DNA of 64,000 bases from Epiperipatus broadwayi (taxonomy: Eukaryota > Animalia > Onychophora). Under the pieces are notes generated by a model. It ran no database searches and was not told where the DNA came from. It worked only from the letters and a program-made list of their open reading frames with translations. Each line of letters starts with the position of its first letter. The first letter of the stretch is position 1. Positions 5,620 through 61,273 of this stretch are shown one piece after another. The DNA lies in NCBI GenBank assembly GCA_028023455.1, contig JAQFVV010000005.1:21948001-22012000 (forward strand), written 5' to 3'. Position numbers and translations under genes: made by a program.

Positions 5620-6474
5620 CGCATGATCAGCATTTCTTATGCTTGTTCGTAACTGTTATTAAAACAGGCAAAACTCTCCATACATTGTGCCATTCAGTGC
5701 AAGCCAGAGTAATCAATGAATGCCAGAAGGCTTGTGCATAAAATCCCAATCCAGTGCCTACTCATCCAATATCCCCAGATTAGTTTCTAGCTTGCAGATT
5801 TCATCAGTGAGGAGTCTTGGATCAGAGATCACTGCACCTAGATCTTAGGATCTAATGTAACCCTCCAGAAGCCACCTTTTATCTCTACTTAACTACAAAA
5901 CTATGAGTCTAAAATTGGAAAACACAATAATATTTTCAATCCAAGCTCATTAGCTTATAGTCATATAGGTCTGAACTCAGTTCAGTACCCATACATTTTG
6001 GTGCCTTTGGGTCTTTAATAACCATAGCCATCACCATTGTATTAGGCAGGGTTGGTGTTAAACCACTAAACATCACATGATCACCATTTCTTATGCTTGC
6101 TCATAACTGTTATTATTACTGTATGGATAGTTTCCTGAGTAATAGGATAGTAGTGGCTATGGTTATTAAAGAACCAAAGACACCAAAATGTATGGGTATT
6201 GAACTGAGTTCAGAGCTATATGAGCTAATGAGTTTGGATTGAAAATATTGTGTTTTCAATTTTAGATTCATAGTTTTGTAGTTAAGTAGAGATAAAAGGT
6301 GTAGTGCTCACAGATCCAAGGCTCCTCACTGATGAAAACCACAAGCTAGAAACTGGTCTGGGGATATTGGATGAGTAGGCACTAGATGGCAATTTTATGC
6401 ACAAGGCTTCTGGCATCCATTGATTACTCTAGCTTGCTGTGTGTGGCAATATGTATATTGAGTTTTGCCTGTTT
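5620..6474. mobile_element. R1 hammerhead-retroelement fold-back insertion (left arm >1 monomer, period 454)
   Basis: Antisense arm 5621-6113 wraps past its own start (CATGATC at 5622 and 6076); sense arm ~6139-6474. 15-bp TSD TAAGTGTCTATCCTT at 5605-5619 and 6475-6489. Confidence 0.9.
6314..6372 (+). ncRNA. R1 type I hammerhead motif (weakened stem II)
   Basis: ATCCAA-GGC-TCCTCA-CTGATGA-AAACCACAAGCTA-GAAA-CTGG-TC^TGGGGA-TA-TTGGAT. Confidence 0.65.
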
Positions 6475-9258
6475 TAAGTGTCTATCCTTTTATAACCTTT
6501 ATAAAAATAACACATATATATAAAAGATAAATCATTCAAAAGAAGAAGAAACCAGCAGGAAAGATATGACTTATTTCTTAGAAATCTCTGCTATAGATAG
6601 CAAAAAGAATTTAGGTATCTCTTAAACATTATTATTATTATTTGTTAAGCCTTCAGCATAATCATGTATTAAAGATAGTAATTTGTAAATAACCATAATC
6701 TATGTAATTATTTGTTTGATTTTACAATGACTGATTTTTAATAGTTCTATAACTGATTAATTACTAAATTAAATATATTTATTTAATGAAGATATATTCT
6801 TTGAATTTGATTTTTAAATAAATAGCCCACAGTCTTAAGATAAATGAAACAAACAAAATATATTTAATGAATTAAAAAAAAAAATTGAATGGTCTGTTGT
6901 CTAGAACTTCATAAGAAGTCTGGTCACCACTAGTAGCAGGATTGAGCCACAACGAATGGACATGGAGCTCTAAAGTTAGTCTAAAATGTTTTAAAAACTT
7001 CAAATTAACAGAATATTCAAAATGAAATGTAATAGGTATTTATTTTTTCTATAGAAATTGAAGGTAAATGAGCCAATCTCTCCTACACTGTTCTAGCTGA
7101 TGGCCAATAGTTTATCATATTCTTGTTCTAAGAGCTAAATATCATACATTTGCATCTATAGTTATTTTATTAATCTTTGAATTATTTTCCAAAAGATTTG
7201 CCTCAACACATAGTTGCTCTCCAGGCTGTGCTTTCTTCAGATGATTTTTTCCCAATTAACAAATAGAGATCTTTCCAAGATACCATGATGCTTTTGTACC
7301 TAAATTTTGACTTACCTGTTAATCTTCTTTCTTTATCTAATTCAACTTACCTGTTGATCTTCTTTCTTTATCTAATTCAGCTAAAAATATTTGTATAAGA
7401 ACGTTATTATAATTCCTTAGTTCAACATGCATCACTCAATGTAGTTTTCTGTTGTAGTCTGAACCAAGATTTTTTTTTTGTTGTTTACATTATTCAGATG
7501 AAGAGTCAATGTCACAATCTTTAGCTAAATGTCCACCACTCTCTTGCAGTGCTAACATACAAAAAAAATAATAATAATCAAGAGGCTATGTGATGACATG
7601 AGTACCAAAAATAACACTGAGATTCAATCCAGAGATCTTGAGCACTTGAGGCCACCATTTTACCACTGCTAATTTATGCATGACAAAAATGACCAGTAGT
7701 TTACATAGAGTCGAAAAATTCTAACTTGTGCAGGAATATCCCAAAACTGATTTTTACTCAGTTATCTTAACCACTTCCGTTATGACAGCTAACACTGACA
7801 GTTTATTACATGGGCAGCTGAGATGTATATGGTTTTATATATATAAATCAATGCACGATAGGATGAGAAGTGGAAAGATATTTAACTTATGGGTCGGTCA
7901 TTTCATTGCATTAAACCATGCAGCCATAGCATATAGTCTAAAGAATTTTCATCATTTATTTATTTCAATATTGATCAAAGTAAGAATTATCGTTTACGTT
8001 CTTCTTTTTTTTTTCAGTTTCTTTAACTAAGTCGTTTACTGAATGTAAACCTATTACTTCGCCCCCGTCTCGTCAAATGTTGCTGGTCTGGATTCTAACA
8101 AGACTAAGATCTGACCAACTATTAGCGGCACAGTTTACATGTAATAGTGAAGACATTTTCAACTTAAATGCCCAGATTTATTCATCCTCCCCACCCACCC
8201 TTTTTTTTTTAATTATTTGAAATGAGTCAATGTTTCATGCCTAAAAAAATAAAAAGACTTCATATATGAAATGAAAATAGAATCAATAAAATTATTAAAT
8301 AATAATAATCAAATGATTAGCTACACGACAGGCCATGTGATTTAGTTTCGATCAAGGAATCTTAAATTTTCGAGTCCGTTTCTCTTCCAGTACGCTAAAT
8401 CTATTCTTAAATGATTTAAAAGTTCCAAAGAAATCCGCTAGAGGACTACTTATAGTTGACACATCACATCAATATAACTAGTAAATAGGACTGTTTTTGC
8501 GAAGCTTTGAGGTAAGTGGTCAAAAATAGTCTATTTTACAATTTGTTCTACTGCTACATTTTCATTATGGGTATTGAATGATTATTATTTTTTTGTAAGT
8601 GTATATACAAACAAATCCCCTAATAGATAAAAACAAGTTTATAAAAATCGGATACAGACATTCAACCTGTAGAGTAGGCTTGTTTTGCTCCATCCTCGTG
8701 CTATTATTTAGATTTCAATTAAAGGAAATAAAAATAATAATGCACTAATTAAAGAATGTTACAGAAGTAATCGTTTATTACCATTAAGATATTAAAGGCC
8801 TTTTGAATATGGATTTGTAAAAGAATATAACCAGAGCGAAGATTAAGTCGTATAAAATTTGTTCACTGGGATGAAAATCTCACATCAGGCTACTGCTTCC
8901 TTCAAGGGTTGAGATTTCAAATTATTTTCTGCAAAAAAAAATGTCAAATTTTTTACTTAAACTTGAAAAAAAAAAAATTACCTTTTGATTTTAAAATATC
9001 TTTTCTGTAATTAAACTATAAATTTTACTTTAGTTTTAGTAAGGTCGTTATGTAACCATGTGTAAATAAAAAAATCCATTATATTTTCTCATTATTTATA
9101 CTAATCTTACTTAAAAACTACGGTATCATCACAATCACTAGGCTTTTTTGTTGATATCCTCTAGTGGCAGTTTAGTTAAGCTTGGAATTGTTGAACGTAA
9201 TATTTATCAGTTTTCTGCTCGAAGTCAACTTGATGTTATAATAAGGCCTATAACTAAG

Positions 9259-9300
9259 CGGTCACACTGAGTCGTAGTTGACCAGAATTTGTCATCGATA
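9259..9300. promoter_or_regulatory. Possible housekeeping-type core promoter motifs
   Basis: CGGTCACACTG (exact Drosophila Ohler motif 1) at 9259-9269 and DRE-like CATCGATA at 9293-9300, in a CpG-retaining region. No gene assigned. Confidence 0.3.
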
Positions 9301-10611
9301 ACAATCCGTTTATAGTTTATTCTAGTATCTCCTCTGTAAAGTTACAACATACATTTTATATAGTAATTAGATTCATTTCAAATTCTATTTTTATATATTA
9401 GTTACGAAAGAATTTAATTTTTTTCTATTAAATTGGCTAAATAAAAATAGTTTCATTATCATTTAATCATTAGTATGTTTTCTTGTTCATCTTAACCAAT
9501 TAATTCATCTCAGATCTTTTAAATTCTTGCTATCATGAAGCAACCCAAGATAATGAGTATGGTTCCCTGGGTCTTAATGGCCATTTTGTTTTACATATTT
9601 AAAAAAATATGAAGTGAAAAATCGAATGATTTATTACTGAGGAGTTCGTAAGAAGTTAACGCTCAAAGTGATAGAGTTGGGCCGCGATCCATGGATCTTC
9701 ATCCCCAGAGATATTGCAAAAAATAAAAAGGTCTTTTTTGAAATTTTGCATAGGTGCCAGAAATTCTAGCCACGCTACTGCTTGTTTTTCAAATTATAGG
9801 CATCATCTTTAGTATTTTGTTTTTTCTCTCAATCTCTTTTATGCACCCTTTCGTAAATACAGAGCAAAAACAAAAATATTTGAACCGTAGTTGTGATATC
9901 TCCATTATTACTTACTGATGAAGATTACATTATGTAGTATTTCAGTCGAGCTTTCTTCATTATCATTCATAAGAATATTAGATATTCTTTTAATAACTAG
10001 TGTTATGTAAATGATTGTTTAGACTACTGAATTGAAAAATTGTATACTTTTTTTTTAGAGGGAGAGGAATCCTCAGTTACTGTCAAAATATCTAGTTTTA
10101 TTCCAGATTTTTTTTAAGTTTTAGGCTAGCCTACCATGAGGTTCTTCTTTCTTAATAATAATGTATACTAAAAAAAAGATAATTAAATTATTAGTTGCTC
10201 AGGAGGTAATGGAATGTTCATCAAAAATGAGAGGTTGCGCTTCAATTCAGGAGTCTTCAGCCCTTAAATGCATTACTTTGTCACTCTAGTAAATCAACTA
10301 TGCATTGGTAAATAAGTCAATTACATGTACACGTTTATTTTCTGCTCAGAGATCAATTCAGTGATTTACTGAGTTTGACGAATTTGTTATGTGAAGTTTG
10401 TGCTTTTGTTGTCATTGAAAGGAATTTGATTTTATTTTGTTAAATAATTTTAAATATGAATCAAGTAACAAAAAAAATAAGATCAATATTCAAACTGAAG
10501 ATACATTAATAGTAGAGAAAGTAATTTATAATTAAGTCCAGAACAGGAAATCTAAAGATAAGCAAAGAAAAGATTAAAATTTTTTATTTGATTTGTATTA
10601 GACCGCTAACT

Positions 10612-11010
10612 ATCACATGATCACCATTCCTATGCTTACACAAGCTGTTATAACATGCACAATTCTTTATACAGTAGTGCCACCCAGTGCAAGTCAGAGT
10701 AATCAATAGATGTAAGAAGGTTTGTGCATTATCTAGTGCCTACTCATCCAACATAGCTTTATAGCTAACTAAAAAGGTGAAAGGTGACTGTTGGATGGTT
10801 GCACTAGATCCTAAGATCTAGATACAGTGCTGTCAGATCCAAGGCTTCTCACTGATAAACACCACAAGTTAGAAACTAGTCTGGAAATGTTGAATGAGTA
10901 GTCACCACATAGGGTTTTTTTGCCCAAACCTTGCATCCATTGATTACTCTGACTTGCACTGGATGGAACTACTGTATGGAGAGTTTTGCATCTGTTATGA
11001 TTTGTGTAAG
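10612..11010. mobile_element. R1 fold-back insertion, older and diverged
   Basis: Antisense arm 10612-10753, sense arm ~10780-11010 with decayed core (CTGATAA...GAAACTAGTC). No clear TSD. Confidence 0.8.
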
Positions 11011-12265
11011 TGTTGACAGAAAAGTTGAACATTTATTATTATAATATGTCAATTTTAGAAATATAAATAGAAAACAAAATCAGCAGTTATAATCTCTTAT
11101 TCCTACAATTTCAGAGCCATCTATTGTTAGTTTGAATAAACAATAGATAGAAGATAATAATAGAATTATAACACTATACTAGATACATCCCCAGATTTGA
11201 TTCTGGTTTACAGTCTTTATCAATGAGGAACCTGGAGGTAATGCATCTCTTAAATAGAAGATCCTTAAACTCTTTTTATTATGAAACTAATCGCTCTAAA
11301 TTCAAAAACACATGCTTTGAATCTCAGCAATTTTGTACACTTATATAAAACTGAAACTATACCAATAGTTATATGTTTTAGTATGCTCCATTTTTTAATA
11401 GCTGACAATGCGTATATTGATCTGGTATCAATTTTTATGATGTCTAACAGTTTTATTATATATTAAAATATACAGATTATTATCATAAACAAAACCAATA
11501 ACTTTATATAGCTATATAATAGTTTGTAATTATATGTTGCCCTGCATGTTTTTGTAGAATGGCTGGGGTTCAAGATCCACAGATTGTACCCAATTCTTTC
11601 ATTTCTGGTTACTCAAACTTCTTATGAATTTCTGAGCAGTAAAACATTTGATTATTATTTTTAATAATATATTGGATTATTTCCATCATCTAATTATATT
11701 TTAGCATTTGACAGCTCATAGCAGGCCAGTTAACTGAAGCTATTAAAATGTATAGTTACTGATCAAGGGTCTTATCTATATTCATAGAATGTCTTCAGCA
11801 TTTGCCATTTAAACATATTATTTCAAATAAAACAAATAACTTTGTATAGATACATATGGTTTGTAATTGTATATTGGACTATTTCCATCATATAGTTGAA
11901 TCTGTTAAGTATATAGTAGTATTTTTTTAAAATAAATAATATTAATGAGACCTTCAGAGATATTTATTAATTCATTAATTTATTAGATATATTTATTATT
12001 GTAAATTTTTATTTATTACCTATTATTATTATTTCTTTTGTTATGACTTTAATATGTGCATATTTACATTTTCACTCGGTACTTTTATCTCTGATACAAC
12101 TATTTCCTTTTCACATTAATTTTTAGAATTAAGATTAAAATCTGACAGTTATGAAAGTATTATTTAAATAGTGTGTTTTATGAATTGACTGTTTATGAAG
12201 TGGATTTAATATGATAACTTATTACATTTTAATTTTTTTCTTTTTTGCTTTTTATAAAACAGTAG

Positions 12266-12574
12266 CAACTCCATACAACAGTGCTACCTAGTGCAAACTA
12301 CAGTAATCAATAGATGCTAGAAGCTTATCAAAATTCAATCTAATACCTATTCATCCAACATACCCAGGCTCCTCGCTGATGAAAACCACCATCTAAAAAT
12401 TAATCTGGAGATGTTGGATAAATAGGTATTAGATAGAAATTGTGATGCACAAATCTTCTTGCATCCATTGATTACTATGGCATGCACTGGATGGCACTAC
12501 TATATGGAGAGAGTTATTACTATTTTAACTGTTTGTAAAAGCATAAGAAATGGTGATCAAGTGATGCTTTAATG
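12266..12574. mobile_element. R1 fold-back insertion, diverged
   Basis: Antisense arm ends at ...CATACCCAG (~12367), essentially at the ribozyme cleavage position. Sense arm starts GCTCCTCGCTGATGA. Confidence 0.8.
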
Positions 12575-12709: not shown

Positions 12710-12796
12710 ACCATTAAGCATCACATGATCTGGCATTCATTGATTACTCAGGTTGGCACAGGGTGGCAATACTGTATGGAGAGTTTTGCTTTGTTT
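12710..12796. mobile_element. Minimal R1 fold-back insertion (87 bp)
   Basis: Short antisense piece joined to a sense piece. 13-bp TSD ATTTTCCAGTTAT at 12697-12709 and 12797-12809. Confidence 0.8.
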
Positions 12797-13140
12797 ATTT
12801 TCCAGTTATCAGGTAACGATGTTTGAGTGGTTTTCAGTTCTTAAGCTTACAGGTAACTATTTACCAACCAATATTGGATACTTAGTTGAGTTATCAATGG
12901 GCCCTCTACTTGGAAGATAAATCATTAGTCTGATAAAAACAAAAAAGTTTTTAAGATTTGACTGGCTCAAATTTGAACATTTGTCATAGGGCATGGCAAG
13001 CAGATGCGGTACTATTTTGCAATAAGGCCTTTATATATAGACATAAGGTATTTATCAGTAGTTATTGCATATAAAATATAATTTTTCTTTTTAAAATTTC
13101 AGTCAGTTTTTGATGTTTTCTAAACATCAAAAAAACTGCC

Positions 13141-13383
13141 TGTTATTAAAACAGGCAAAACTCACTATACGTATTGCCACACACAGCAAGCTAGAGTAAT
13201 CAATGGATGCCAGAAGGCTTGTGCATAAAATCCCCATCTAGTGCCTACTCATCCCATATCCCCAGACGAGTTTCTGGCTTGTGGTCTTCGTCGGTGAGGA
13301 GCCTTGGATCTGAGAGCACTGCACCTAGATCTTAGGATCTAATGCAACCATCCAGCAGCCACCTTTTATATCCACTTAACTAC
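13141..13383 (-). mobile_element. R1 single arm, cut on the right by an unrelated block
   Basis: Close to R1 consensus. Minus-strand hammerhead 13251-13309 has core CCGACGA (U4 changed). Confidence 0.85.
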
Positions 13384-16128: not shown

Positions 16129-16882
16129 TACAAAACTATGAGTCTTAAATTGAAAACACCTTAATATTTTCAATTCAAGCCCATCAGCTTATATAGTCAT
16201 ATAGGTCTGAATTCAGTTCAGTACGTATACATTTTGGTATCTTTGATTCTTTAATAACCATAGCCACCACTATCCTATTAGGCAGGATTGGGATTCAGCC
16301 AATAAACATCACATGATTACCACTTCCTATGCTTGCTTATAACTTATTAAAACAGGCAAAACTCACTATACGTATTGCCACACACAGCAAGCTAGAGTAA
16401 TAAATGTGATGTTTATTGGCTTAAAACCAATCCTGCCTAATAGGATAGTGGTGGCTATGGTTATTAAAGAACCAAAGACACCAAAATGTATAGGTACTGA
16501 ACTGAGTTCAGACCTATATGACTATATAAGCTGATGGGCTTGAATTGAAAATATTAAGGTGTTTTCAATTTAAGACTCATAGTTTTGTAGTTAAGTGGAT
16601 ATAAAAGGTGGCTGCTGGAGGGTTGCATTAGATCCTAAGATCTATGTGCAGTGCTCTCAGATCCAAGGCTCCTCACTGACGAAGGCCACAAGCCAGAAAC
16701 TCGTCTGGGGATATTGGATGAGTAGGCACTAGATGGGGATTTTATGCAAAAGTCTTCTGGCATCCATTGATTACTCTAGCTTGCTGTGTGTGGCAATACG
16801 TATAGTGAGTTTTGCCTGTTTTAATAACAGTTGTAAGAAAGCATAGGAAGTGGTGATCATGTGATGTTGATTGGCTTAAAAC
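16129..16882. mobile_element. R1 fold-back insertion containing a complete monomer (period 455)
   Basis: Sense arm 16404-16882 starts and ends with ATGTGATGTT(T/G)ATTGGCTTAAAAC (16404 and 16859). Antisense arm 16129-16400 also crosses the monomer junction. Confidence 0.9.
16661..16719 (+). ncRNA. R1 type I hammerhead ribozyme
   Basis: Stem I ATCCAA/TTGGAT plus TCCTCA/TGGGGA; CTGACGA 16676-82; stem II GGC-CACAA-GCC; GAAA 16696-99; C-TC-G-TC, predicted cut after 16705. Confidence 0.75.
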
Positions 16883-18125: not shown

Positions 18126-18477
18126 ACTCAGGAATTAATCAATAGCAAGTCCAGAGTTTATGCAGTTTGATTCATATTTCATGCATCCAGAATTATACAC
18201 AAGATCAATTTCTCTTCACCTCTTGTTTCAATTGTTCTAATTTTAAATTAATTTTACGTTATGAGTACAACAATTTTTCAGTGAAATTTTAGCTGCTTTT
18301 AATGATTCATTTTCAGAATTTTTAAGATTAAGAATTTTTTTTAATTTAATAAATCCCAACTTTTAGAATGAATGAGTGATCAAAACCTGGAAAATTCAAA
18401 CAAAATGAAGTTCACTCAATGATAAGAACACCAATGATAAACAAATATTAAGAAGTGGTGCAAGGATATCTATATTT

Positions 18478-18755
18478 AAACCATTAAGCATCACATGATC
18501 ACCATCTCTTATACTAGCACATAATTGTTTATAAACAAGGCAAAACTCTCGATACAGTAGTGCCACCCTGTGCCAACCAGAGTAATCAATGGATGCCAGA
18601 AGGCTTGTGCATAAAATCCCTCTCATCCAATATCCCCAGACTAGTTTAAATATAGGGACATCCAATCTAGTAGGCATTAGATAGGGATTTTATGCACAAG
18701 CCTTCTGGCATCCATTGATTACTCTGGTTGGCACAGGGTGGCACTACTGTATGGA
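18478..18755. mobile_element. R1 fold-back insertion with templated junction insert
   Basis: 13-bp TSD GATATCTATATTT at 18465-18477 and 18756-18768. Centre 18645-18666 is identical to 17938-17959. Confidence 0.9.
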
Positions 18756-20232: not shown

Positions 20233-20252
20233 TGTTATTTAGAACATTAGAG

Positions 20253-20772: not shown

Positions 20773-21199
20773 ATGCTCGTTATTGGTTTAACCAGGCTTT
20801 TCTTGCTTCAATTTTATAAAACATTTAATAGAGCTTTTTCAACGATGGAACTTTCAGATGTAGTCACAAAATTAAATGAGATGGCTCCTTTGACCCTGGC
20901 TTCGGATTGGGATAATGTAGGATTACTTCTGGAACCAAGTCCTCCACTACTCATCAAAAAGATTTTACTGACCAACGATTTAACGCTCGAAGTGGCCGAA
21001 GAAGCTTTCCAGATGAAAGCTAACTTAATAGTTTCGTATCATCCGCCCATATTTCAACCTCTGAAATCTCTAACCATGAACTTTTGGAAGCAGAAAATTG
21101 TTGTTCGGTGCCTGGAGTCGAGAGTAGCTATTTATTCTCCTCACACTTGTTATGACGCCTTGTGCGGGGGGGTTAATGACTGGTTAGGCCAAGCATTCG
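20773..21199 (+). CDS. NIF3L1: NIF3-like protein 1, coding exon 1
   Basis: WDNVGLLLEP, LLTNDLT, SYHPPIFQP, AIYSPHTCYD, GGVNDWL are NIF3 hallmarks. Donor G|GTAATT at 21200 (phase 1). Confidence 0.95.
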
Positions 21200-22887
21200 G
21201 TAATTATATTTTTTTTTTTGTTTGTTTGTTTTTGAAGAATATTTTGTCACCACCCAAAAACTAGTTCAGAGTCCTTTTTTTTCCTGTTAAAATAGAAATG
21301 AGATTGGGCTGGCGGTCAGTGACTAAGAATCCACCTTGCCAATCTTATTCAATTTTTCGTTTAGTTTTGAATTGAGAAGATAACAATGGAATCGAATTTG
21401 ATTAAATCAATATTTATATATTTTAGACAAATATTAGCATATTAATTTTCCTTTTCTAATTATATTTTCTGCAAATGTAAATTCTCAAAAGAAAAAATGG
21501 GGGGGGGGTCGCTTCCCTTTTAAATTGGTAAGCCAGGTAGCTGGCCATCGAGTTATTAATCGAAAATTGAGTTTCTAACCAACTCCTAATAAATTAAAAT
21601 AAGCTTTAAGGAAAATCAAATATTTTGCCTACAGACATAAGTGATTAGATTAGCTTGTTGAGTAAGGTTTGTTCCTCTGGAAACGAATCCTTTGCCCTGC
21701 AGGAAGCCATGTTTTATTTTCGGATAAACTCTTGTCCTAAGACATCTTCACTTTTAAATAATAATTGTTTTATTGTACAACAATTTGTCATCAGCCAGAT
21801 TTAGTAGAAAATCAATTTAGCTGAACTTCACTTTTTGCTATATATTTTATATGGCTGTATTTAAAACGTTTATTTTTAATGTTTCAAAAGGCGTGAAATA
21901 AAAGTAAGCCATAAATTTAACACATATGTGTTTAGGATCTTTATTCTCAATTAAATGCAACTAATAAATTCCCTTTTACTGATCAACATTGGATGCCCAA
22001 GAAGAGCCTAGGGGCAGCTCATTTTCCTGCCGTGTTTATGACCTGTGGTTCCAATATGAGCGAACCTTAAATATCTAAGCCATCATTTATTTTTTTCTCA
22101 AATAAAAAATCTGCATTTATTTATTGACTGTTCGGCTATGCTTAGCAAGAGTAAAAAAAAAAAATCGTAAAATTATCCACCAGTCAGTAAATGACCTAGC
22201 CTGGTGAGTAATGTTTTTTTTCCCTTATTTTTTTTTGCAGTGAGATTTGCCTAGAAGTGGGCAATTTGAAGCTATTGATTTTGATTTCATGGCTGCCAGA
22301 TAGTATTAATCAAAAGTATATAGATATTGAAAATTGATTATAATATTCTGAGATATCTAAAATATCCAAGATCCACTGGGATTCAAAGCTCAGAATGTGT
22401 TATAGGTTAGCACAGAAATCACTGCACCACAAGACTTTTAAAAAAGTAGTTCCTAAATACATTCCAAATATCTCAGTCTTACTATCTTATGCTATACTTT
22501 TCCAATAGATATCTATTTGAATAAATGTACATATGTTTTCTATCTTTTTTAAACATAATGCCCATTTTCAGATTTTGTGATATTTTTAATCCTCATATTG
22601 GATGTTATCTTCCATCAGCAGTTGCGGAAATGGAATTAAAAACAGTTATTCTCTGGTGTAATTTCTATCATTCCAGTTCAAACAATCTCTATTAAAAACG
22701 GCAATTACTCTGAATTAAGATATATACTTATTTATTCCTTTGCATTTGCTTACATTCTAAAAAATAACTTCCTTTAACTTTTCACAATGTTTTTTAGTAT
22801 ATCTATAGTTTTGGCAGTCACTCTTCTCCAGAGCTGTAAATACAATTCAAAATGATTTTATATTATTTTTTATTTATACAAACTTGA

Positions 22888-23895
22888 TCATCATCATTTT
22901 TAATTATCATTGATACACTTGGTCTCTCCAAATGTAATCTAATTTTTCTGATCCATAGTCTCACTTTTCTGCATCAATCAGCCTTTTTGCTTTGTTCTTC
23001 CATCTCACATATGGTCTCTTTCTAGGTCTTTTACAATCTTTTGGCATCCATTTTATGACTTCAGCTGTCCATTTATTATTATCTCTTTCAGAAATGTGTC
23101 CAGTTTACCATTTCAGTCTCTTAATTTTTTTAATAATGTTTCACTCTCATATTTCACTTTTGATCTCTTTTATTACTCCCAACATACATCTTTCCATACG
23201 TCATTGAATGATCTGGGTCTGTTAAGTTTCGAGTCCAAGATCTATAAGTAAGAATTGATAAAACATCTATTAAAAATATTTATTTTCAAATGCAGACATT
23301 TTTTTTTAAAAAGCATTTCATCCAAGTTTAATTAATTTATCCATTGTTTTTATTTGTATTAATTATCTGATCAAAGTATTTGAAGTTATTAACTTCTAAT
23401 TTATGACTATCAATCTTTACTTTTTTCTTCTTAGAAAATCCATTGAACATTACTTTAATCTTTTTAATATATATATTTAGTTCTACTTTTCTGTTTTAAT
23501 CTGATAACTCTTGCAACATTTTCTGGAGCATTATTTGCAAAAACTATTTTATCACCTACAAAATGTAAATGACTTAAATAATTTCCATATTATTCCCTTA
23601 GCTTCTCGTTTTAATCCACAAAATAGTTTTCATGAAATTGCTATAAAAAGTTTTGGAGATATGAAATTATCCTGTTGTTAAACCTGATGTATTTTGATAA
23701 ATATTCTTCAGATTATGACAATACCCTAGATCTATATCTTGATCCAAAGCTTTAATCACTGTAAAAATCCTTATAGAATCAAGTGCCTTTTTTATAATTA
23801 ACAAATCTAAAGCATATTCATTGATTCTTTTTATAACTTCTCTCAATGCTCAAACATGAATTTCTGTCCATCTTGTTCTTTTGGTTAATTTCAGT
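22888..23895 (-). mobile_element. Decayed RTE LINE fragment (RT region to 3' end)
   Basis: Colinear homology with 52561-53740; many stops. Confidence 0.8.
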
Positions 23896-24574
23896 ACAAA
23901 TTGCTTGTTCAAACAAACATGAAATGATTTAATATAGTTATATTTTACAGCTATGAAGAAGAATGCTAACAATCAAAATTGTTAATTTAATAAAAAGCAT
24001 TGTGGAAAATGCAAACAAGAGAAATTTTTTAAAGATTAATAAATACCAGTCTATGGTCATTTGGACATCATTTACTTTATTATTTGCAACTAGCCTGTAT
24101 ATATTTTCATTATATCATTCAATTTTGATTACTGGCTCATGTTTTGTTGTTATACTTTTATCTTTGAATAGACCTGATCTAAGTAATCATTATTCAACTC
24201 CATTACTGGCATTTATTATTATCCTGAGTGATCAGTAGATGCCAAATGGTATGCTTAATAAAATCTATATCTTAATAATGCCCTATCCATATCCGTTAAC
24301 TAGTTTCTGGCCTTTATTAACTAGGATTTGGACCTGGATTTAGTGTTCCCAAATCTTCTTCACTTTTTTGAAAACAAAGATCTAATCTGGGAATATGGAT
24401 AAGTTAGTATAAATGTTATCATATTATATCTTTTGATTACTCAGGTTTATAATAATGGCAGATATAACATTGTGTAAGTCAGATCTTCAGACGTTTCCTT
24501 GATTTTGTAATAGTCTAAACTGGATTTTTTTTGTAATAGAAGCCCTTGAGTAGTATGTTTCTTACAGATACACA

Positions 24575-25200
24575 ATTATCATTTTGAATCATTATCAATC
24601 TACTGCAGGATGAAGGTATCTCCAAATTTAATCCAGTTTCTCTGATCCATAGCTTCTCTTTGCACTATATCAACAAACTTTCTTATTTTATCCATCTATT
24701 TCACAAATGGTCTTTTCCTAAATATTCTACATTATCTTGGGGTCCAGTTTAAGACTTCAGCTGTCCATCTATTATTATCTTTTCTAGGAATATGTTCAAC
24801 CCAGTTTCATTTCAGTCTTTTAATTTTTTTCAATGATACCTATTTGTTCTTTTATCAAGTATTTCACTTTTGATTTCTTCTTGCTACTCTGAAAATATCT
24901 ATCCATATTTTATTGAGTGATCTGGTCTTTGTATTGCTCTTTTGTTAAGTGTCCTAGTGTCAGATCCATAATTAGTAACGGGTAAGATACATCTATTAAA
25001 AACTTTCTTTCCAAACTCATAGGCGTATTTCCTTTTAATATTAAGTTACTTCTACCAAATGTACTTCATCAAAGTTTAATTCTATAATTTATTTCACCCA
25101 TTCATTTGTATTAATAATATGATTAAGGCATTTACAGTTGTTTTAATTCATGATTATCAATCTTTATTATCTTTTTTCTACACTTAACATTTCCTTAGTT
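24575..25200 (-). mobile_element. Decayed RTE LINE 3' fragment
   Basis: ATCAATCTACTGCAGGATGAAGG 3' terminus homologous to 52580-52610. Confidence 0.8.
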
Positions 25201-26747: not shown

Positions 26748-27068
26748 TATCTCTAAAAGAGAATGTACACGTGGAAGGCTGCAGATAATAAAAATAGATT
26801 CAATTATGTTATTCAGAAATGATCTTAATATGGTATTAAAACCATGCATAGGCAATCGCTTGTTTAAAAAGAGTAATAAAATAAATAAAAACTTTATTTT
26901 AACAATAAATTGGAATAGATGAGAAAGTTTTGATGAAGGATACTAATTGGATTCGGGTCATTAAGAGTCCAATCACTACATGTGTATTAAAACAATAATT
27001 ATTATTCATTTGATTCTATTCATTTAAAAAGAATTGTCTCAAGATTAGCAGTCGGAACATTATGTTAT

Positions 27069-33900: not shown

Positions 33901-33929
33901 ATATTTTTTATTTAAGGATCTGAGACTAG

Positions 33930-37238: not shown

Positions 37239-37362
37239 GTAAGTATTTGAAATTAAATCAGTCAATTATTTTAGCAGATAGAAGTGTTATTTTTACATAA
37301 ATAGGCAAAATCGTTAAACATAGAATTCAGCAAATATACACTTAGTTGTTAGACATATTGTA

Positions 37363-41174: not shown

Positions 41175-41483
41175 ACACTAAACATCACATGATCACTATT
41201 TCTTATGCTAGCACATTACTGTTATTAAAACAGGCAAAATTCTCTCCATATAGTAGTGCCACTCAGTGCCAACCAGAGTAATCAATGGATGCCAGAAGGC
41301 TTGTGCTCTCAGATCCGTAGCTCCTCACTGATGAAGGCCACAAGCCAGAAACTAGTCTGGGGATATTGGATGAGTAGGCACTAGATAGGGATTTTATGCA
41401 CAAGCCTTCTGGCATCCATTGATTACTCTGGTTGGCACTGAATGGTACTACTATATGGAGAGAGTTTTGCCTGTTTTAATAAT
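41175..41483. mobile_element. R1 fold-back insertion (NIF3L1 intron 3)
   Basis: Arms joined through GTGC microhomology at ~41303. Only a weak 7-bp flank duplication (AATAACA). Confidence 0.9.
41312..41371 (+). ncRNA. R1 type I hammerhead ribozyme
   Basis: CTGATGA 41328-34, GGC/GCC stem II, GAAA 41348-51, CTAG-TC cut after 41357, TGGGGA pairing with TCCTCA. Confidence 0.75.
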
Positions 41484-44899: not shown

Positions 44900-45463
44900 T
44901 TAATTTTTTTTTTTCCATATGTCAAAGCATTGACCAGGAAGCAAATCCGGGCCAGCTGCTTGGTAGGCAGCTATGCTAACCACTTGGCCACCAATGCTTG
45001 ACAAGATTTTTTTAATACTTTTTATTTCATTTCTTTTAAAAAAGACAACCTTAGCTTTATCAAAATTAGTAGTGCGGCTTGTATCTTTTTCATGGACATA
45101 TAAAGCAGAATGAAGATATTTATTTCTAACCTTACTTTTATGTATATTTATTCTTTCATTTAAGCTCAAACTACTCTGACCTATATAAACCTTCTTAGAA
45201 AAACAAAGGATAATATACACTACACCAGGAATAGTTTTCCTATCAAAAATTTCCTTTGTATTATTTAATAAATTATTCAAAGTAATACCCTTTTTCCAAG
45301 CAATTTTACTTCCAAACAAATTATTATTCTTACATACAATTTTATAAGAAAACAATTTAAATGGCAAAGAAATAAAATCATATTTTTCTTTATCCTTTAC
45401 ATCCTTACAAATATTAACTAATAAAGTACTTTTAATAAATTTATCAGTGTAGCTAACACTCAA
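44900..45463 (-). pseudogene. Penelope-type GIY-YIG endonuclease remnant (left arm; 3' end runs into a SINE)
   Basis: PGVVYIILCFSKKVYIGQSSLSLNERINIHKS...SALYVHEKDTSRTTNFDKAKVV. Confidence 0.85.
44905..45002 (-). mobile_element. tRNA-Gly(TCC)-derived SINE, ancestral-like form
   Basis: 71-nt body 44997-44927 GCATTGGTGGCCAAGTGGTTAGCATAGCTGCCTACCAAGCAGCTGGCCCGGATTTGCTTCCTGGTCAATGC aligns with eukaryotic tRNA-Gly(TCC); tail TTTGACATATGG-An; 14-bp TSD AAGATTTTTTTAAT at 44891-904 and 45003-016. Confidence 0.85.
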
Positions 45464-48907: not shown

Positions 48908-50175
48908 AACTATGGTTAATAAAGTTATATTTTTAAATTGTCTTTTTGTTTTTCCTACACTAGACATAACCACATCGTGTTAAAACATAATTCTTAGCAT
49001 CAAAAATTATAATTCAAGGTTTTAAAGTTGTTCAAAATATTATCATCACCTTTACCATTCTAGAACATTTGTCAATATTGTCCAATACCTAAACTTTATT
49101 TTCTTTCTCATTCATAGATTTTTTTGGAGGAGGAGAGAGTATTAATTCCAGTGCTAATATTGGTAATTTATTTTCATTGCATATAGTCATATGACATTGT
49201 TTTCTTTATATCAATCGTTATCAATTCCTGTAAATCCATTATTATGTAATGTTTTATTTTCTTTCTTTTTTTTATGATATTAATCATAGATTTTCTAATC
49301 ATCCATGTCCACAACTCTACTGTCTTTTTATTTTTGAAATCATTTTATTCAATTTCGATCAATAGAGTACCTGTAATCTGTGACTTATATACACAGTGTT
49401 CCCCAATGAAAAGGTGACTGGGTTTTTTTTCTAAATTGCTTGCAGTGCCATCTATAAGTCAATGCATGTATTATGTAGTGATATAGTTCAATTGGCTACC
49501 TATATATACTGAACAATGATAAAGCTATTTGTAAGAGACTGTGGTCTGGGTCAACTAGTGAATGCTGGTTCAGCACAAGATGTGCATCTTGGGGATTATA
49601 CATCTTTTGCATATGTTTTTGGTCATATGTTTATAATTATACCTCTCCACAAGCTATTAAAAATGGATAGAAACCAGTTCCTACCTTGTGTGAGAGTGGT
49701 ATTGTGAAAATAATACTACAGAAATATTCATTCGGTAGATAATCTCTAATCTAATGAATGACTAATAAAAATTAATATACTTCCATCAAATAGTTTGTGT
49801 TAAATGTTGTGAGAGCAGTGTTCGACACATCGATTAAATTGTAGTTATTGGTGCTCTCTCTTTATATATATATTGAACAATGATAGATATATTACTTTTT
49901 AAGTACGAGATTGTGATCTGAGCTAACTGATGAGTGGTGGTTCAGCACAAATGTACATCTTGGGAATTGTACATCTTTTCCACATATTTTTGGTCATGTT
50001 TATGATTACAACTTTCCATGAAGTGTTAAAAGTGGATAGAAACCAATCCTTATCTTGCATGAGTGGTGTAGTGAAAATTGCACTTCAGAAACATTGAGAT
50101 ATAATAAACACTTCCATACTTCTCCATTCTTTTTAAATTCATATAAATAAAGATATAATAAAAGTCAAATGATCC

Positions 50176-50215
50176 CCAAGATGCATTTCGTGCTGAACCA
50201 GCACTCATCAGTTGG
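50176..50215 (-). ncRNA. Canonical minimal type I hammerhead ribozyme (R3b copy 1)
   Basis: CCAA-CTGATGA-GTGCTG-GTT-CAGCAC-GAAA-TGCA-TC^TTGG; all core nucleotides present; 6-bp stem II; palindromic stem III ATGCAT; AUC cut between 50180 and 50179. Confidence 0.88.
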
Positions 50216-50577
50216 CCCAGGTCACTATCTCTCACATATATCTCTATTATATGCAAAGTATTTATCTAGAGTAAATTGTTACATTTAACCATTGTCAAAC
50301 TCCCTCCACTCACAACTTTGACGTCATCCATTTCAGATAAATACACTAATGATTATTACTAATCATTTTCGAAACTAGATATTATCTCTAGCACAGATAT
50401 AAACTTTAAACCTCAGTTAAAGATTAATATATCTGATTTTTTAAATTTACACACACGGAGTTATTCACCTTTCTCTGTCCTGTATATAATATCTTTAAAG
50501 ATATAATAAACACCTCTATACTTCCCTATTCTTTTTAAATTCATATAAATAAAGCTATAATAAAAGACAAATGCCCC

Positions 50578-50617
50578 CCAAGATGCATTTCGTGCTGAAC
50601 CAGCACTCATCAGTTGG
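50578..50617 (-). ncRNA. Canonical minimal type I hammerhead ribozyme (R3b copy 2)
   Basis: Identical core and stems 402 nt from copy 1. Confidence 0.88.
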
Positions 50618-52574
50618 TCCAGGTCACTATCATATATATCTATTATATTAAGAAACATTATTCATTAAGTGAATAATCTCTAATTTAATGAATGTCTAAT
50701 AAAAATTATTTAAGTGTTAAAATTCTTCAAAAAAAATTACTGCAGGAATTAAGATAGCATCACAAAATATCAAATAAACAGAACAACTGAGCGGCGTATT
50801 CTATATATGGACATTTGTGTTTCACAGATTGGTTTGTATATTCATCTGCAGTCATATTATTTTGTCTTTTTATCCCCTCTCCTCTTTCTTGTGGTAGTAA
50901 TAACCATACTCGTTTGCGAATGACTGCTGCATTTTTTCTCTCTTACTCTGCTAAGTGTGACATGTGAATATAGGTGCGTGCTTTTACGTTTAGTAATTCT
51001 GGTATAAGTTGAGCTAAATAATTATTTTTTGATTACACTTACATTAAGTAATGATTATCTTCATTAATAGTTCTCATTGCATAATATAGATATATCCAAA
51101 CACATACGTTACCATATTAATAAATAAATAAAATTCCGCCTGTAGCACATGTTTCTGTCTGAGATAGAATTATTTTTATCAATGAGGTAGTACATAAAAT
51201 CTTGTATACAACACGTGTTTGCTTCCTTCCATTCATGACATTTTAAAACGTCAATAATTTAATACTTTATATACAATCGCAAATATTAATATTTTTCATT
51301 ATTAAATATAATTTCATGTTTGGGAGTGGTTTATCTATTATCTAACTTGATGGTCAGTGACTTACGATTCACAAAAGTCGAAGGGATGGGTTAAGTACAG
51401 AAGTAATTCAACTTTTTGTGGAACAAAAAACTTGAAGCAATTATGTTTTTATCCAAACATGGATTTAAACATGTTTCCTACACATTAACTGACCCATTGA
51501 TTCTAATATAGATAAATAAATTAAAGATTTATGAGTCGTTACGTTAATCCAAAGTAGCACGATATTCTAAAGAATTTTAGGTTAAAAATAAGTCGTTTAA
51601 ATGATATACAAAAATAATATTTATTGCCATAATAAATCAACTCCGGTCTTAGAGAATAAATCTATTCCGGATATTCGAGGTTGCAATGAAATCCTTTTTT
51701 AAATGAAAGCAGTAGTATCCGTCTAAATAAATTACGTACCCACTATATAGTGTTTACTTTTATTTAGTGGCCTACGTAAGCATATACAACGAGGTTCGAA
51801 AATACTATCCACCCCGTAATAGCTTTTATGTCACGTGCTACATTTTTATTATGTTTACAAAACCCAAAACTGATTATTTTTTTAATATATATATAAGGTA
51901 GGAATTGTCCATGGCATAAATAAGAATACAAATGGCAATAATTACAAAGACAAAACAAAAAGTCGGAGGATAATATAGTATGCTTAATATTTTATAAAAT
52001 CACTTCTGTTCATCTCACTTAGCTGGCCGATTCGCGATACCGCCCACTCCCCTAATCCTGGGCCTTTAGGCTAGTACCGTGTTAGTCACACACATTCCTT
52101 TGTGGATACAATGATTAAAGAGTCAGAAATAGTCCTTACTACTGAAAAAATAAGATTTCAAAAAAAATACTGAATTTGATCACACAATTAAATATTTAAT
52201 TGAAATATTTAATTTTTAATTATATGCCTAATAAAAAAAAAAAGTATAATTAAATGAAAATTGTCATCTTAATTCATTAATAATTATTATTAACTATTAC
52301 AACTAAATCCGTTTTTTCACTATTTTCTTTTATCTTTTAGTCATTTTAATTTACTTCAGGGATCGGACAGCCATTTATTACATTAAATGTCCCAATGGTA
52401 TTGCGTGTTTCTGCTACTACATTTTTGTCTTTTACTTACACACGCAGTAATTCGGATTCGAATCTTTTTTTTCTTCTAATTTTTTCTTCTATTTTTTTTT
52501 TAAAAATTCTGATGTTAAAACGTGTATGCTCGTTTATGAATGGCTGCTAATGATGATAATCATCATCATCATTA

Positions 52575-55533
52575 TCAACCATTATCAATCCACTGCAGGA
52601 TGAAGGTCTCTCCAAGTTTAATCCATCTTCTCCGATCTTTAGCTTCTCTTCTCCACATCACCCCTACACATTTTCTTATTTCATCCATCCATCTTACATG
52701 TGGTCTTCTGGGTCTTTTACAATCTCTTGGAATCCAGTTTAAAATTTCAATTGTCCATCTATTATCATCTCTTCTAGCAATATGTCCAGCCCAACTCCAC
52801 TTCAATCTTTTAATTTTTTCAATGAGGTCAGTAACACCTGTTTGTTCTCTTACCCATACATTGCGTTTTCGATCTCTTCTTGTTACTCCCAACATACATC
52901 TCTCCATACTTCTTTGAGTGGTCTGAAGTCTCTGTATTGATCTTCTATTAAGTGTCCAAGTCTCAGATCCATAAGTAAGAACTGGTAAAACACATTTGTT
53001 AAAAACCTTTCTTTTCAAACACATAGGCATATTTCCTTTTAATATCAAGTTATTTCTACCAAAAGCACTCCAACCAAGTTTAATTCTATGATTAATTTCC
53101 TCTATTATGTTTCCATCTGTATTAATAATCTGACCAAGGTATTTGTAACTCTTAACTTCTTCTAATTCATCATAATCAATCTTTATTTTCATATTTTGAG
53201 CAAATCGATTAAACATTACTTTAGTCTTTTTAACATTTATCTTTAGTCCTACTTTCATCTGATAACTCCTGCAACATTTCCTGCAGTTCGGAAGCATTAT
53301 TTGCAAAAACAACTACATCATCTGCGAAATCTAAATGACTTAAATAATCTCCATTTACTTTCACTCCTTTAGTTTCCCATTTTAATCCACAAAATACTTC
53401 TTGCAGCACTGCTGTAAAAAGTTTTGGAGATATGGAGTCACCTTGTCTTACACCTTTCTCAATGTTGACTTTCCCAGTATCATTATGTAATCTAATTGTT
53501 GCTGTTGCATTTTTATAAATATTCTTTAAAATATGACAATATCCTGGATCTATACCTTGATGATCCAATGCTTTAATCACTGAAGAAATGTTTATAGAAT
53601 CAAATGCCTTTTCATAATCTACAAATCCAAAACATAATGACAACTCATATTCATTTGTCCTTTCTATAACTTCTCTCAATACTTGAATATGATCTACTGT
53701 ACTAAAACCACTTTTAAATCCAGCTTGTTCTCTTGGTTGGTGAAAATCCAACGTTCTCTGTAGACGAGTTGTAATTATCTTGGTAAAAATTTTATATAAA
53801 ACTGATAAAAGGCTGATAGGTCTGTAATTTCTAATATCTTCTTTATCACCTTTTTTAAATATTAATATTATTACTGCATTCTTCCAATCATCCGGTACAT
53901 CTTTATCATTTAGACATTTGGTATATAACTTTGCTAATATTTTTTCTGTTTCTTCACCTGCTTCTTTTAATATATCAATCATAATTCCATCATTACCTGG
54001 AGCCTTTCCTTTTTTCATACATTTAATTGCATTTCTCACTTCTTCATTTAAAATTCTGGGCAATTCGGAAGATGTAATAGATATAGGAGGTACTTGTTCT
54101 TTATTACTATATAATTCTTGATAAAAATCTTCTACCAATTTCATAATGTCATCTCTCTTTTTAGTAATAATTCCATCTTTTTCCTTATTGCAGATATAAA
54201 TTTCCTACCAATACCAAAATGTTGTTTTACATTCTTAAGACTTTTATTTTCTTCTACAGCTTTTCTTGCTAGTTCACAGTTATACTTTCTTATATCATTT
54301 TCAACTCTTTTCCGCACCATTTTACAAAATTCGAGATATTCAATTCTTTTTAGTGCATCATTCTTGCATATCTTCATATTCCTTCTTTTCTTCATAAGTT
54401 CTCTAGTCTCAGTAGAAATTTTATTAGTCAATTGCTGCTTTTTTCTACCAGCTATCTTTGTTGCAGTTTTTAAAAGTGTATCAGTTATTTTCATATTAAT
54501 TTCATTCAAATCTGAATCATGTTCAAAATCTACTAATACTTGAAACCGATTTGTAAGTTCTAATTTAAATTCATTAGAATGTTTCTGAAGATTAGGAATA
54601 TCAACTGTAAATATAGTTTTTCTTAATAATTTTTGTCTCTCTAGTTTTACATTAACATGTATCTTACCCCTTACTAATCGATGATCACTTCCTGTGTTAA
54701 ATTTATTAAGAACATTACAATCTTGAAATATGTATTTCCTGTTAGTCAAAATATAATCCAATTCTGCTGTACCTTCATTTGGATGCTTCCATGTCCATTT
54801 CCTTCTAACATTTTTCTCAAAAAAAGAATTCATAATATAAAGTTTTTCCTTCTCTGCAAACTCCACAAGTCTATGTCCTCTCTCATTTCTATTACCATAA
54901 CCAAAATTACCTACAACACTTTCATCTTTCATTTGTTTACCAATTCTAGCATTAAAATCTCCCATAACAATTTTAAAATGTTGTTTACTCTGATCAAAAG
55001 CCTTTTGTACATCCATATAAAAATCTTCTACTACTTGTTGGGGCATAAACCTGAATTATCTGCATTTGATATCTGCTATTAAGTTGTATAACTAATCTTG
55101 CCACTCTGTCTGATGCACCATCAATCTCCAGAACATTGTTCTTCCACTTTTTATTTATAATGAATCCTACTCCACTTGTATTTCCAATATTTGTGCCTTT
55201 ATAATAGAGCATATGTCCACTTTTTAAATCAATTGTCTCTTCACCTTTTCTTCTAACTTCACAAAGTCCAATAATATCCCATTTAATATAAGAGAGTTCT
55301 TCTTCTAATTCTTGCAATCTTCCTTCACTTGAAAGTGATCTGCAGTTGTAAGTACCTAAATAAAAAGTTGTCATCAAATGGCAGCCTGGGTCTGCCTCCA
55401 GGATATTCTTAGCACCCTCCGCCTTCGGCCACCAACCGCTGCCTTGGTTGGTGACTTTACAGCCTCCTGGGATTAAGGGCCATGCTTTATTTTTGTCTGT
55501 CATAATTGTATAATTGGGAAAAATCTTTATCAT
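52575..55533 (-). pseudogene. RTE endonuclease/reverse transcriptase ORF, frameshifted
   Basis: Four overlapping ORFs in shifting frames reconstruct one polyprotein. Confidence 0.9.
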
Positions 55534-59329: not shown

Positions 59330-60500
59330 TATCTGGTGCTCTACAATATTTTGATGATTTTCTGATGGCAACAAAAATTTATTCTTACAAAAAATTATTA
59401 GATATGTTCAAAACCTCAATGTATATATTAAGAACTTAAATTTTCTTGGATATAAAATAGATGCAAAAAGCATCCATTCCAACAAAACAAAAAAATTAAA
59501 GTAACAAAGGAGGAAGACTTTTAAGAGTATTCCATTAGTTTTAGGCCTCATTAATTATTGAGAGCTTTCTCCATCTAAACAGAGGCAATCACTATACAGA
59601 CTATTTGATAAAAAAAAAAAAAGTAATCTGGAAGTGCACACCATTTCCCATTGCATTTGACACAAAATGCATATCTAAAAGAAAAAAAATATGCACAGAT
59701 AAACAGAAAAGCCATAGTTTTGATCATTGGCATAAAAAATGTTTCATGATTATCTACATGATAAATCTTTTATATTGCAAATTAATTACAGATCACTTTT
59801 AGGCACATTTGCAACAGACAAATGTATTCCCTATTACATCTCCCTTTATAAGCTGAGGGGTCTCAATTTCTTACCAGAATATGACTTTCAGTTTGAAAAT
59901 ATTGAGGAGGGAGAGAAGAATTCTAATATTGAAGCATTAAATTGATTAACAACAAAAACCTCAGAGCAGTTAGAATCAAATAATCAATTTGTGCTCAAAG
60001 CACCACTGATGACCTCTGATTCCAGAAATTAATTAAATGGATCCATCTAGGTTGGTTAAACAAAAAAACTAAAAGAACTGGATCTTATTTACTGAATGCA
60101 TAGCTTGGAACTCCCGATAGAAAGCAGTTCAGTGACCTGATCCTGAGGATCTTTGAACAGGAATTCATATCAATCATGTTGATCCATGAATGAGCAACCT
60201 GTTAGCAATACTTGTTGCTGTAATTGCCTGGCTGCCACAGCATCCATTAATTATTTGCAACTCATGATCTACATAAAGTACAGTGTCAAATAAACTTCCA
60301 CAAGTTTATTCAAACAATTTTGTGTCAAATATAATTTAGAACAAATTTTCATCCTAAGAATAATGGTCAAATTGAGATTGGTTCAAGCATCAAAAAGAAC
60401 TCATAAAAATCTACAGTGAATACCTGAAACACCTATATAGATAGAATGAACGTGGCACAATATACTATACCTAGCACAATTATATTCATAATTCCAAATG
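59330..60500 (+). mobile_element. Decayed Ty3/Gypsy pol remnant
   Basis: Fragments LQYFDDFLMA (RT), LNFLGYKIDAKSIH, and HPKNNGQIE (integrase HPQSNG-like). Confidence 0.6.
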
Positions 60501-60996
60501 AACTGCTATTTAACAGAACTTAGGACAATCCTTAATATTAATCAGTATGGTTATAAAACAAAGATGAAATTGCTGAAATATGAATAAGTACCCAAGTATT
60601 ATGCTGTGTTCAATGGGACCTCAAATGTATTTTAATAACAATTATAAAAAAAAACAAAAGGCCTGAATACAGATGAGATGTAGAAACTAAACCTGATAAT
60701 GATGAAACCAAATCAAAAAATAAAGCCATCTTAAGAACAATGTATTCCAAAACTAACATTTTCCAGGGAGAGCAATGTATTCCAAAACTAACATTTTCCA
60801 GGGAGAGAGAATTTTGTGAACTCATCTTAAGTTCATCCACAAATAATGGACTTATCAGCTGATCAATGAATACAAATAAATATCCAATGGCATAAACAGG
60901 CCAATTTTAAAGCTAGTTTAGTGAATCTGATTGTTCCAATAAAAAAGGGGATTTAGTTATATATTGAAAAATAGTTTGAGAGGATGGTCAAACAAT

Positions 60997-61273
60997 CAAA
61001 ACTCTCCATACAGTAGTGCCACTCAGTGCAAGAAGGTTTAGTACATAAAACCCCTATCTAGTGCCTATTCATCCATTTATCCCCAGACTTGTTTCTAGCT
61101 TGTGGCTTTTATCAGTGAGTAGCCTTGGATCTGAGAGCAACCCTCCATCTTTTATCTCTACTTAACTACAAAATTAAACCTTCCTGCACTGAGTGGTACT
61201 ACTATATAAAGAGTTTTGCCTGTTTTAATAGCTTGAGCAAATATAAAAAATGGTGATCATGTGATGTTTAATA
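60997..61273. mobile_element. R1 fold-back insertion
   Basis: 10-bp TSD GTCAAACAAT at 60987-96 and 61274-83. Minus-strand motif 61071-61130 with AGC/GCT stem II and core CTGATAA. Confidence 0.85.

Follow-up and report, generated by a model that had tools for sequence, protein, structure and literature searches.

We identified a dispersed repeat family, R1, in a 64,000-nt stretch of the genome of the onychophoran Epiperipatus broadwayi (assembly GCA_028023455.1, contig JAQFVV010000005.1, positions 21,948,001 to 22,012,000 of the forward strand; hereafter the window). Our analysis suggests that R1 belongs to the non-autonomous retroelements of the Penelope-like element (PLE) type and carries a type I hammerhead ribozyme predicted to work as a dimer; in other words, that it is an animal retrozyme of the class without long terminal repeats (a non-LTR retrozyme). 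We put the probability of this reading at roughly 80%. Elements of this kind are already known, and the R1 family itself may be undescribed.

Using the 455-nt unit at window positions 16404-16858 as the reference, together with its trimer, blastn searches placed R1 in 14 insertion groups between 5619 and 61270. The copies are 74-100% identical and sum to 5,264 bp, or 8.2% of the window. These values agree with a first-pass annotation of the window, which had counted 14 insertions spanning ~5.5 kb (~8-9%) and had described the family as high-copy and devoid of open reading frames (ORFs). Indeed, the open frames in a trimer of the R1 consensus, which was built from 109 alignments, are at most 50 amino acids long, and the genome holds 30,516 exact copies of the ribozyme core. 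The circular permutation noted previously, with periods of ~454, 455 and 444 nt, was recovered as three arms that extend beyond a single unit (5619-6115, 497 nt; 16404-16882, 479 nt; 37413-37881, 469 nt), and the three hairpins named at the time are all present in the consensus. Thus, the earlier description of copies and periods stands; what it overlooked is that most insertions are inverted, head-to-head pairs of arms flanked by duplications. The G+C content of the consensus is 40%, compared with ~30% for the window. Folded as a circle, the plus strand is highly structured (minimum free energy (MFE) of -161 kcal/mol, z = -7.2 relative to shuffled sequences), with helix I of the hammerhead lengthened into a long stem; the minus strand is ordinary (-110 kcal/mol).

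The hammerhead is laid out in the consensus in the order helix I 5' strand (…AUCCAAGGCUCCUCA), CUGAYGA, A-GGC-CACAA-GCC-A, GAAAC-UA-GUC and helix I 3' strand (UGGGGAUAUUGGAU…). Every base of the catalytic core is in place (C3 U4 G5 A6 N7 G8 A9, G12 A13 A14, A15.1-U16.1 and H17). Helix I is open and consists of UCCUCA/UGGGGA (6 bp), an internal loop and AUCCAA/UUGGAU (6 bp), while helix II comprises 3 bp (GGC/GCC) and a 5-nt loop. Helix III is limited to an A-U and a C-G pair with a 2-nt loop, so that ACUAGU reads as a perfect palindrome. The MFE fold of 84 nt gives back helices I and II. Because helix III is only this palindrome, two R1 motifs would have to pair to yield an active dimer. This matches the canonical metazoan type I hammerhead, defined by a helix III of 1-2 bp and a loop of 2-4 nt, the whole palindromic and acting as a dimer (PMC4209133), and it upholds the type I assignment made previously. 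Co-folding two 68-nt cores with RNAcofold gave an undistinctive result (z = -1.25), which supports the dimer neither way. The predicted cut falls after C302 of the unit, at the end of GUC, which is C29068 in the copy at 29019-29086; the consensus thus points to the same nucleotide that the first-pass annotation had proposed.

Searching for the hammerhead core pattern yielded six matches in the window, five of them in R1, compared with 0.08 expected per shuffled window. Every core base is kept in 5 of the 12 full-length motif copies of R1 in the window, all five on the plus strand:

29019-29086, plus strand: identical to the family consensus; GUC ends at 29068.
41308-41375, plus strand: ACUAGU palindrome and core preserved; helix I altered distally.
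38515-38582, plus strand: core intact; one helix II base altered (GCC to GGC).
16656-16723, plus strand: core intact; helix III palindrome broken (ACUCGU) by a private A-to-C change at 16702.
6311-6376, plus strand: an older copy with an intact core; helix II and the helix III palindrome changed.

Three copies had been singled out earlier as the best, and those near 29024 and 41312 keep that rank; the one near 16661 loses it through the broken palindrome at 16702. An alternative fold, with a helix III of ACUCGUC/GAUGAGU and a cut after GUA at ~16724, was rejected: it rests on a base that an alignment of ~90 copies showed to be private to the copy at 16404, its helix I failed to form, and the consensus backs the GUC site.

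Extending the search to the 5.6-Gb genome, we found the exact 35-nt core 30,516 times and its reversed control not once; some of these cores sit in arrays with a spacing of 456 bp. Variants at one helix II pair were counted as well. The pair is G-C in 30,516 cores, A-U in 6,550, A.C in 1,330 and G.U in 950, and about 1,500 double changes would be expected if the two sites were independent, as against the 6,550 observed. This covariation between amplified sublineages reflects a single evolutionary event, and the support it lends to helix II is therefore modest.

R1 also occurs in the sequences of other organisms. Near-identical words were found in 15 public runs from six studies, labelled as nine different organisms, and the family is therefore common to a group of related species. 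In contigs of four organisms, the deepest-covered part of the unit is the motif with about 70 nt on each side, and the place corresponding to 16702 is an A, which restores the ACUAGU palindrome, in over 99% of the contig depth. A scan of metagenomes for the 35-nt core returned 0 matches.

To characterize how R1 is inserted, we analyzed the window and 30 further loci from this genome, comprising 87 arms in 52 insertion groups. A typical insertion consists of a reverse-complement arm followed by a direct arm, head-to-head, with target-site duplications outside; 38/52 groups are such minus-plus pairs, and the plus-minus order was found in 0/52. The duplications measure 7-15 bp, and most insertions have one of 8-15 bp. 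Examining the arm ends revealed two very different distributions. The 5' ends are spread widely, and 87% of the 3' ends fall at unit positions 419-436 (“A”) or 6-24 (“B”), with B lying ~55 nt beyond A along the tandem. Within an insertion, the two arms almost always carry one end of each type (AB 30, AA 1, BB 0; n = 31; binomial P about 1.5e-8, given that about half would be AB by chance). Both ends lie within U/A-rich hairpin loops: end A (~421) in that of CUGUU-UUAAU-AACAG (units 413-429) and end B (~6-24) in that of AUUGG-CUUAAAA-CCAAU (units 12-28). Each of the nearly fixed outer ends of R1 is the 3' end of one of two inverted, cDNA-like arms. No two copies have the same inner junctions, arms extend for as much as 933 nt (about two units), and the junctions share 1-3 nt of microhomology with the target. 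Overall, the variable duplications, the 5' truncation and the arms exceeding one unit bear out the earlier classification of R1 as a retroelement. The two arms of one insertion resemble each other slightly more than arms of different insertions do (0.915 vs 0.892), a difference from which nothing firm follows about a shared template. The insertions in the window are as follows:

Insertion 1, 5619-6477: inverted arm 5619-6115 (1.09 units, B end, unit ~6) and direct arm 6133-6477 (A end, ~421); duplication GTGTCTATCCT on either flank (5619/6477).
Insertion 2, 10590-10996: inverted arm 10590-10754 and direct arm 10752-10996; duplication TGATTTGT; older subfamily (75-77% identity) with a decayed hammerhead core.
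Insertion 3, 12293-12574: diverged (~74-76%); arms 12293-12367 (minus) and 12363-12574 (plus); no clear duplication.
Fragment 4, 12729-12812, plus strand: 3' part of the unit (~353-434).
Insertion 5, 13140-13383, minus strand: a lone 5'-truncated arm, unit 184-427, 97% identity.
Insertion 6, 16129-16882: inverted arm 16129-16411 and direct arm 16404-16882 (1.05 units, B end); source of the reference unit.
Insertion 7, 18475-18752: arms 18475-18647 (minus) and 18669-18752 (plus), forming a long hairpin; duplication GATATCTATATTT.
Insertion 8, 27067-27352: arms 27067-27242 (minus, B end) and 27240-27348 (plus, A end); duplication AACATTATGTTAT.
Insertion 9, 28804-29190: arms 28804-28987 (minus, B end) and 28985-29190 (plus, A end); duplication ATCATTATTTAT.
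Insertion 10, 37361-37881: inverted 44-nt “tail” arm 37361-37404 and direct arm 37413-37881 (1.05 units, A end); duplication AGACATATTGTA (37361/37881).
Insertion 11, 38259-38743: arms 38259-38444 (minus, A end) and 38496-38743 (plus, B end); duplication AACATTTGAAAT.
Insertion 12, 39335-39598: short inverted pair 39435-39521 (minus) and 39520-39596 (plus).
Insertion 13, 41176-41482: arms 41176-41306 (minus, B end) and 41303-41482 (plus, A end); duplication AATAACA.
Insertion 14, 61027-61270: decayed; pieces 61044-61139 (minus), 61149-61176 (minus) and 61190-61270 (plus).

Apart from these 14 insertions, a strongly decayed fragment resembling the R1 hammerhead (74% identity) lies at 11187-11233 on the minus strand. 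The inverted arms also explain the outcome of searching the whole window against Rfam, which returned microRNA-like hairpins such as insertion 7. These matches are spurious, and R1 arms account for many such calls in this genome.

The anatomy of R1 resembles that of PLEs, whose hallmarks are partial tandems, an adjoining inverted and 5'-truncated copy at the 5' end, and a tail of 30-40 bp on one side (PMC8557442). R1 displays the inverted truncated arm and a one-sided tail, here of ~55 nt, and shares its genome with an autonomous PLE. Intact PLE frames of 809-831 amino acids, with YVDD and GIY-YIG motifs, are present, although Pfam returned no match on the intact ORF despite these visible motifs, and a search with a PLE ORF returned nothing at E<=1e-50. 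The autonomous family is represented by the following loci:

L061, 3622-7362; L064, 4152-7886; L063, 4029-10000: PLE copies with frames of 809-831 amino acids.

The elements at L061-L064 form partial tandems (spacing of 2,788-2,885 bp) with inverted arms, bear a tail of ~40 nt on one side and lie in (TA)n tracts; their anatomy is the same as that of R1. The 3' region of this family contains a candidate minimal hammerhead of the U3-A8 type (UUGAGAA ... GAAAC), a motif that Rfam fails to recognise. A C3-G8 hammerhead was found in none of 34 PLE loci, either by pattern search or by Rfam. The window itself holds a PLE remnant, a GIY-YIG ORF of 187 amino acids at 44900-45463 (minus strand), which has more than 100,000 candidate relatives in the genome at first look, some of them in the open frames of 809-831 amino acids. 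In place of its C-terminal part there is a tRNA-like sequence at 44926-44997, to which the Rfam tRNA model gives 27.6 bits, slightly below the gathering score; it is probably an inserted tRNA-derived short interspersed nuclear element (SINE).

These observations can be arranged into a putative life cycle. Tandem source copies of R1 would be transcribed, and paired hammerheads, located either in one multimeric transcript or in two RNAs, would cut after C302 and free unit-length RNA, which a host ligase could circularise. The reverse transcriptase of an autonomous PLE would then copy multimeric or circular R1 RNA at a staggered nick made by the GIY-YIG endonuclease. Both 3' OH ends of the nick would prime cDNA synthesis on R1 RNA, at sites A and B, and the two cDNAs would be joined at their 3' ends to give head-to-head arms. 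Such twin priming is the simplest model that we can offer for the arms. A more specific and rather doubtful proposal is that the strict pairing of A and B ends (30/31) reflects PLE integration with two coordinated priming sites on a single ribozyme-bearing RNA, multimeric or circular. If this were true, two coordinated priming sites, one per nicked strand, would account for the unexplained one-sided “tail” of PLEs. R1 would then be a minimal, 455-nt natural substrate for reconstituting PLE reverse transcription, and its anatomy would prove directly, for an invertebrate, that retrozymes are mobilized by the machinery of PLEs.

Several results weigh against our interpretation of R1 as an active, PLE-borne retrozyme. 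An Rfam search, which had been proposed earlier as a check, found no R1 hammerhead (RF00163, clan CL00010) in a scan at the gathering threshold, at E<=10, with pieces of 96-201 nt or with a two-unit copy. The base of helix II has an A on both sides rather than G10.1-C11.1, forming either an A.A pair or extra bases, and this may weaken catalysis. These two flanking A bases, together with the very short helix III, are the likely reasons for the Rfam miss. At the corresponding place, the axolotl hammerhead HHR_Amex2 is reported to have a mismatched U.U (PMC7229834). Only the copies at 29019 and 41308, among the 12 full motif copies in the window, look fully intact, and copies differ pairwise by about 11%, a divergence which indicates that the main burst was not recent. 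A blastn comparison of R1 with 34 loci of one PLE family revealed no similarity. None of the R1-bearing runs from other organisms is recorded as RNA; they yielded contigs only, with many opposite-strand joints, and may well be low-coverage DNA.

The arms point in the same direction. None of the 87 has its 5' end at the predicted cleavage site (unit 301-315), and the 3' ends lie 119-175 nt away from the predicted cut, so integration bears no trace of cleaved templates. The arm ends fit either uncleaved multimers or religated circles as templates, without discriminating between the two. Furthermore, no R1 arm in the window holds two ribozymes on the same strand. The copies in the window are hence unable to release a unit alone; they are products, not sources.

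We weighed three other explanations. The one that survives best accepts mobilization by PLEs but holds that the hammerhead is weak, dead or used for something else, such as trimming read-through transcripts, that no circular RNA is made, and that arms exceeding one unit are plain copies of source loci arranged in tandem. Arrays of R1 spaced by 456 bp could indeed supply multimeric templates, no arm ends at the cleavage site, and an A.A in place of G10.1-C11.1, the missing Rfam match and the poor in vitro cleavage by minimal hammerheads of the PLE type (PMC4209133) would all suit a feeble ribozyme. Conversely, no other part of the unit is as well conserved among organisms as the motif region, with its nearly fixed palindrome, and the helix II pair is kept in both amplified sublineages. 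The plus strand is strongly and strand-specifically structured, as in retrozyme circles, and axolotl retrozymes with comparably weak single motifs do form circles (PMC7229834). We thus consider this explanation improbable.

A second explanation, that R1 is a SINE-like passenger of a long interspersed nuclear element (LINE), or a satellite spread by recombination, appears very improbable. It draws on the presence in the window of a LINE with endonuclease and reverse transcriptase domains (52575-55533), on the tandem R1 arrays elsewhere in the genome, and on the variable duplications and 5' truncation, which suit LINE-type integration as well. However, the LINE region has no blastn similarity to R1, and R1 has neither a poly(A) or microsatellite tail nor a head resembling tRNA, 5S or 7SL RNA. 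Arms that are systematically head-to-head, together with a tail on one side, are traits of PLEs, not of LINEs (PMC8557442), and the R1 copies are scattered through the window as separate insertions that have duplications of their own, rather than forming an array.

Finally, a foldback DNA transposon (a miniature inverted-repeat transposable element) with the arms as terminal inverted repeats, the identity that the first-pass annotation had set against its own, might seem to suit the mostly inverted-repeat insertions with their nearly fixed outer ends, flanking duplications and microRNA-like Rfam calls, but it is effectively excluded because the duplications vary from 7 to 15 bp, the inner junctions are unlike in every copy, the ends are asymmetric by ~55 nt in 30/31 pairs and the arms can span as many as two tandem units; some copies consist of just one, 5'-truncated arm, and the autonomous PLEs of this genome have the same geometry.

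Our preferred reading of R1 as a PLE-dependent retrozyme is consistent with comparisons to known systems. Animal non-LTR retrozymes are built from a unit of ~150-450 bp that codes for no protein and holds a type I hammerhead, occur as tandem copies, have a G+C content below 50%, and are flanked by target-site duplications that exceed the 4 bp seen in plant retrozymes; as a class, they are expressed as RNA of unit length, both linear and circular (PMC7229834). R1 conforms to this description in its unit, its tandem arrangement (arms of 1.05-2 units, 456-bp arrays), its G+C content and the length of its duplications. Like satellite 2 of newt and axolotl and Sm-alpha of Schistosoma (PMC7229834), it has a short non-coding unit with one type I hammerhead. 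As in the amphibian elements, helix III seems too short to act alone, hence the predicted dependence on a dimer. Copy number is very high in both, with 30,516 intact cores of R1 and ~126,000 motifs in axolotl (PMC7229834). R1 differs from the metazoan retrozymes in its length, since 455 nt exceeds their RNA sizes of ~170-400 nt while agreeing with their repeat range of 150-450 bp. It further differs in the A.A at the base of helix II and in its dispersed inverted-arm insertions, with no long arrays in the window.

R1 shares with PLEs the partial tandems, the variable duplications and a hammerhead located in the repeated part (PMC8557442; bioRxiv 10.64898/2026.07.22.740005), but has no ORF, and its tail is ~55 nt rather than 30-40 bp. 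It also lacks homology to the pseudo-LTR (pLTR) of the one PLE family compared, which has a U3-A8 motif and a preference for (TA)n targets. Minimal PLE hammerheads have a helix I of 4-5 bp and a helix II of 7-8 bp (PMC4209133). The R1 motif resembles them in the palindrome formed by 15.2-16.2 and loop 3, in its predicted action as a dimer, and possibly in having one additional nucleotide that separates A9 from stem II (PMC4209133). Its helices do not: helix I is long (6 bp plus extensions) and helix II short (3 bp), which places the R1 hammerhead nearer the canonical metazoan type. Plant LTR retrozymes are likewise non-autonomous, bounded by ribozymes and thought to spread via circular RNA, yet, unlike R1, they carry type III hammerheads within LTRs, a primer-binding site and a polypurine tract, have 4-bp duplications and a high G+C content, and rely on Ty3-gypsy helpers (PMC4918200).

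Retrozymes are among the few ribozyme-based routes to abundant small circular RNAs in animal cells, and their mobility is still debated. A dependence on PLEs has been proposed for vertebrates, where the two co-occur and show similarity in the pLTR (Li et al. 2026, preprint, bioRxiv 10.64898/2026.07.22.740005). The anatomy of R1, in an invertebrate whose genome contains no fewer than 30,000 intact ribozyme cores, supports this dependence. R1 does not represent a new class of element; rather, it adds a quantified anatomy with strict A/B pairing at two hairpin loops, a copy number and one compensatory pair in helix II, and it provides a compact model element for experiments.

Other features were observed in the window. 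A second ribozyme repeat family, R3, occupies 49500-50715 with a period of 402 nt. Its hammerhead (50174-50217, minus strand) has CUGAUGA, a 6-bp helix II and GAAA-UGCAUC; its palindrome, AUGCAU, takes the position that ACUAGU has in R1, a correspondence that supports the R1 motif. In a 101-nt scan, which served as a control for R1, the Rfam Hammerhead_1 model recognised it weakly, at 16.4 bits (E = 0.11), under the gathering score of 34. A core pattern outside R1, at 30070-30101 on the minus strand (CUGAUGA ... GAAAC-U-GUU), has no convincing helix I and may be a chance match or a decayed motif of another lineage. The LINE at 52575-55533 lies on the minus strand and comprises four consecutive ORFs with a broken frame, including APE endonuclease and reverse transcriptase domains, and LINE-related fragments occur at 22881-25102 (repeat families D7, D11, D13 and D15). 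Lastly, a 163-amino-acid frame at 20773-21264 (plus strand) matches the N-terminal part of NIF3-like proteins (Pfam PF01784, E = 2e-33), and the closest relatives of this NIF3L1-like exon are 50-63% identical.

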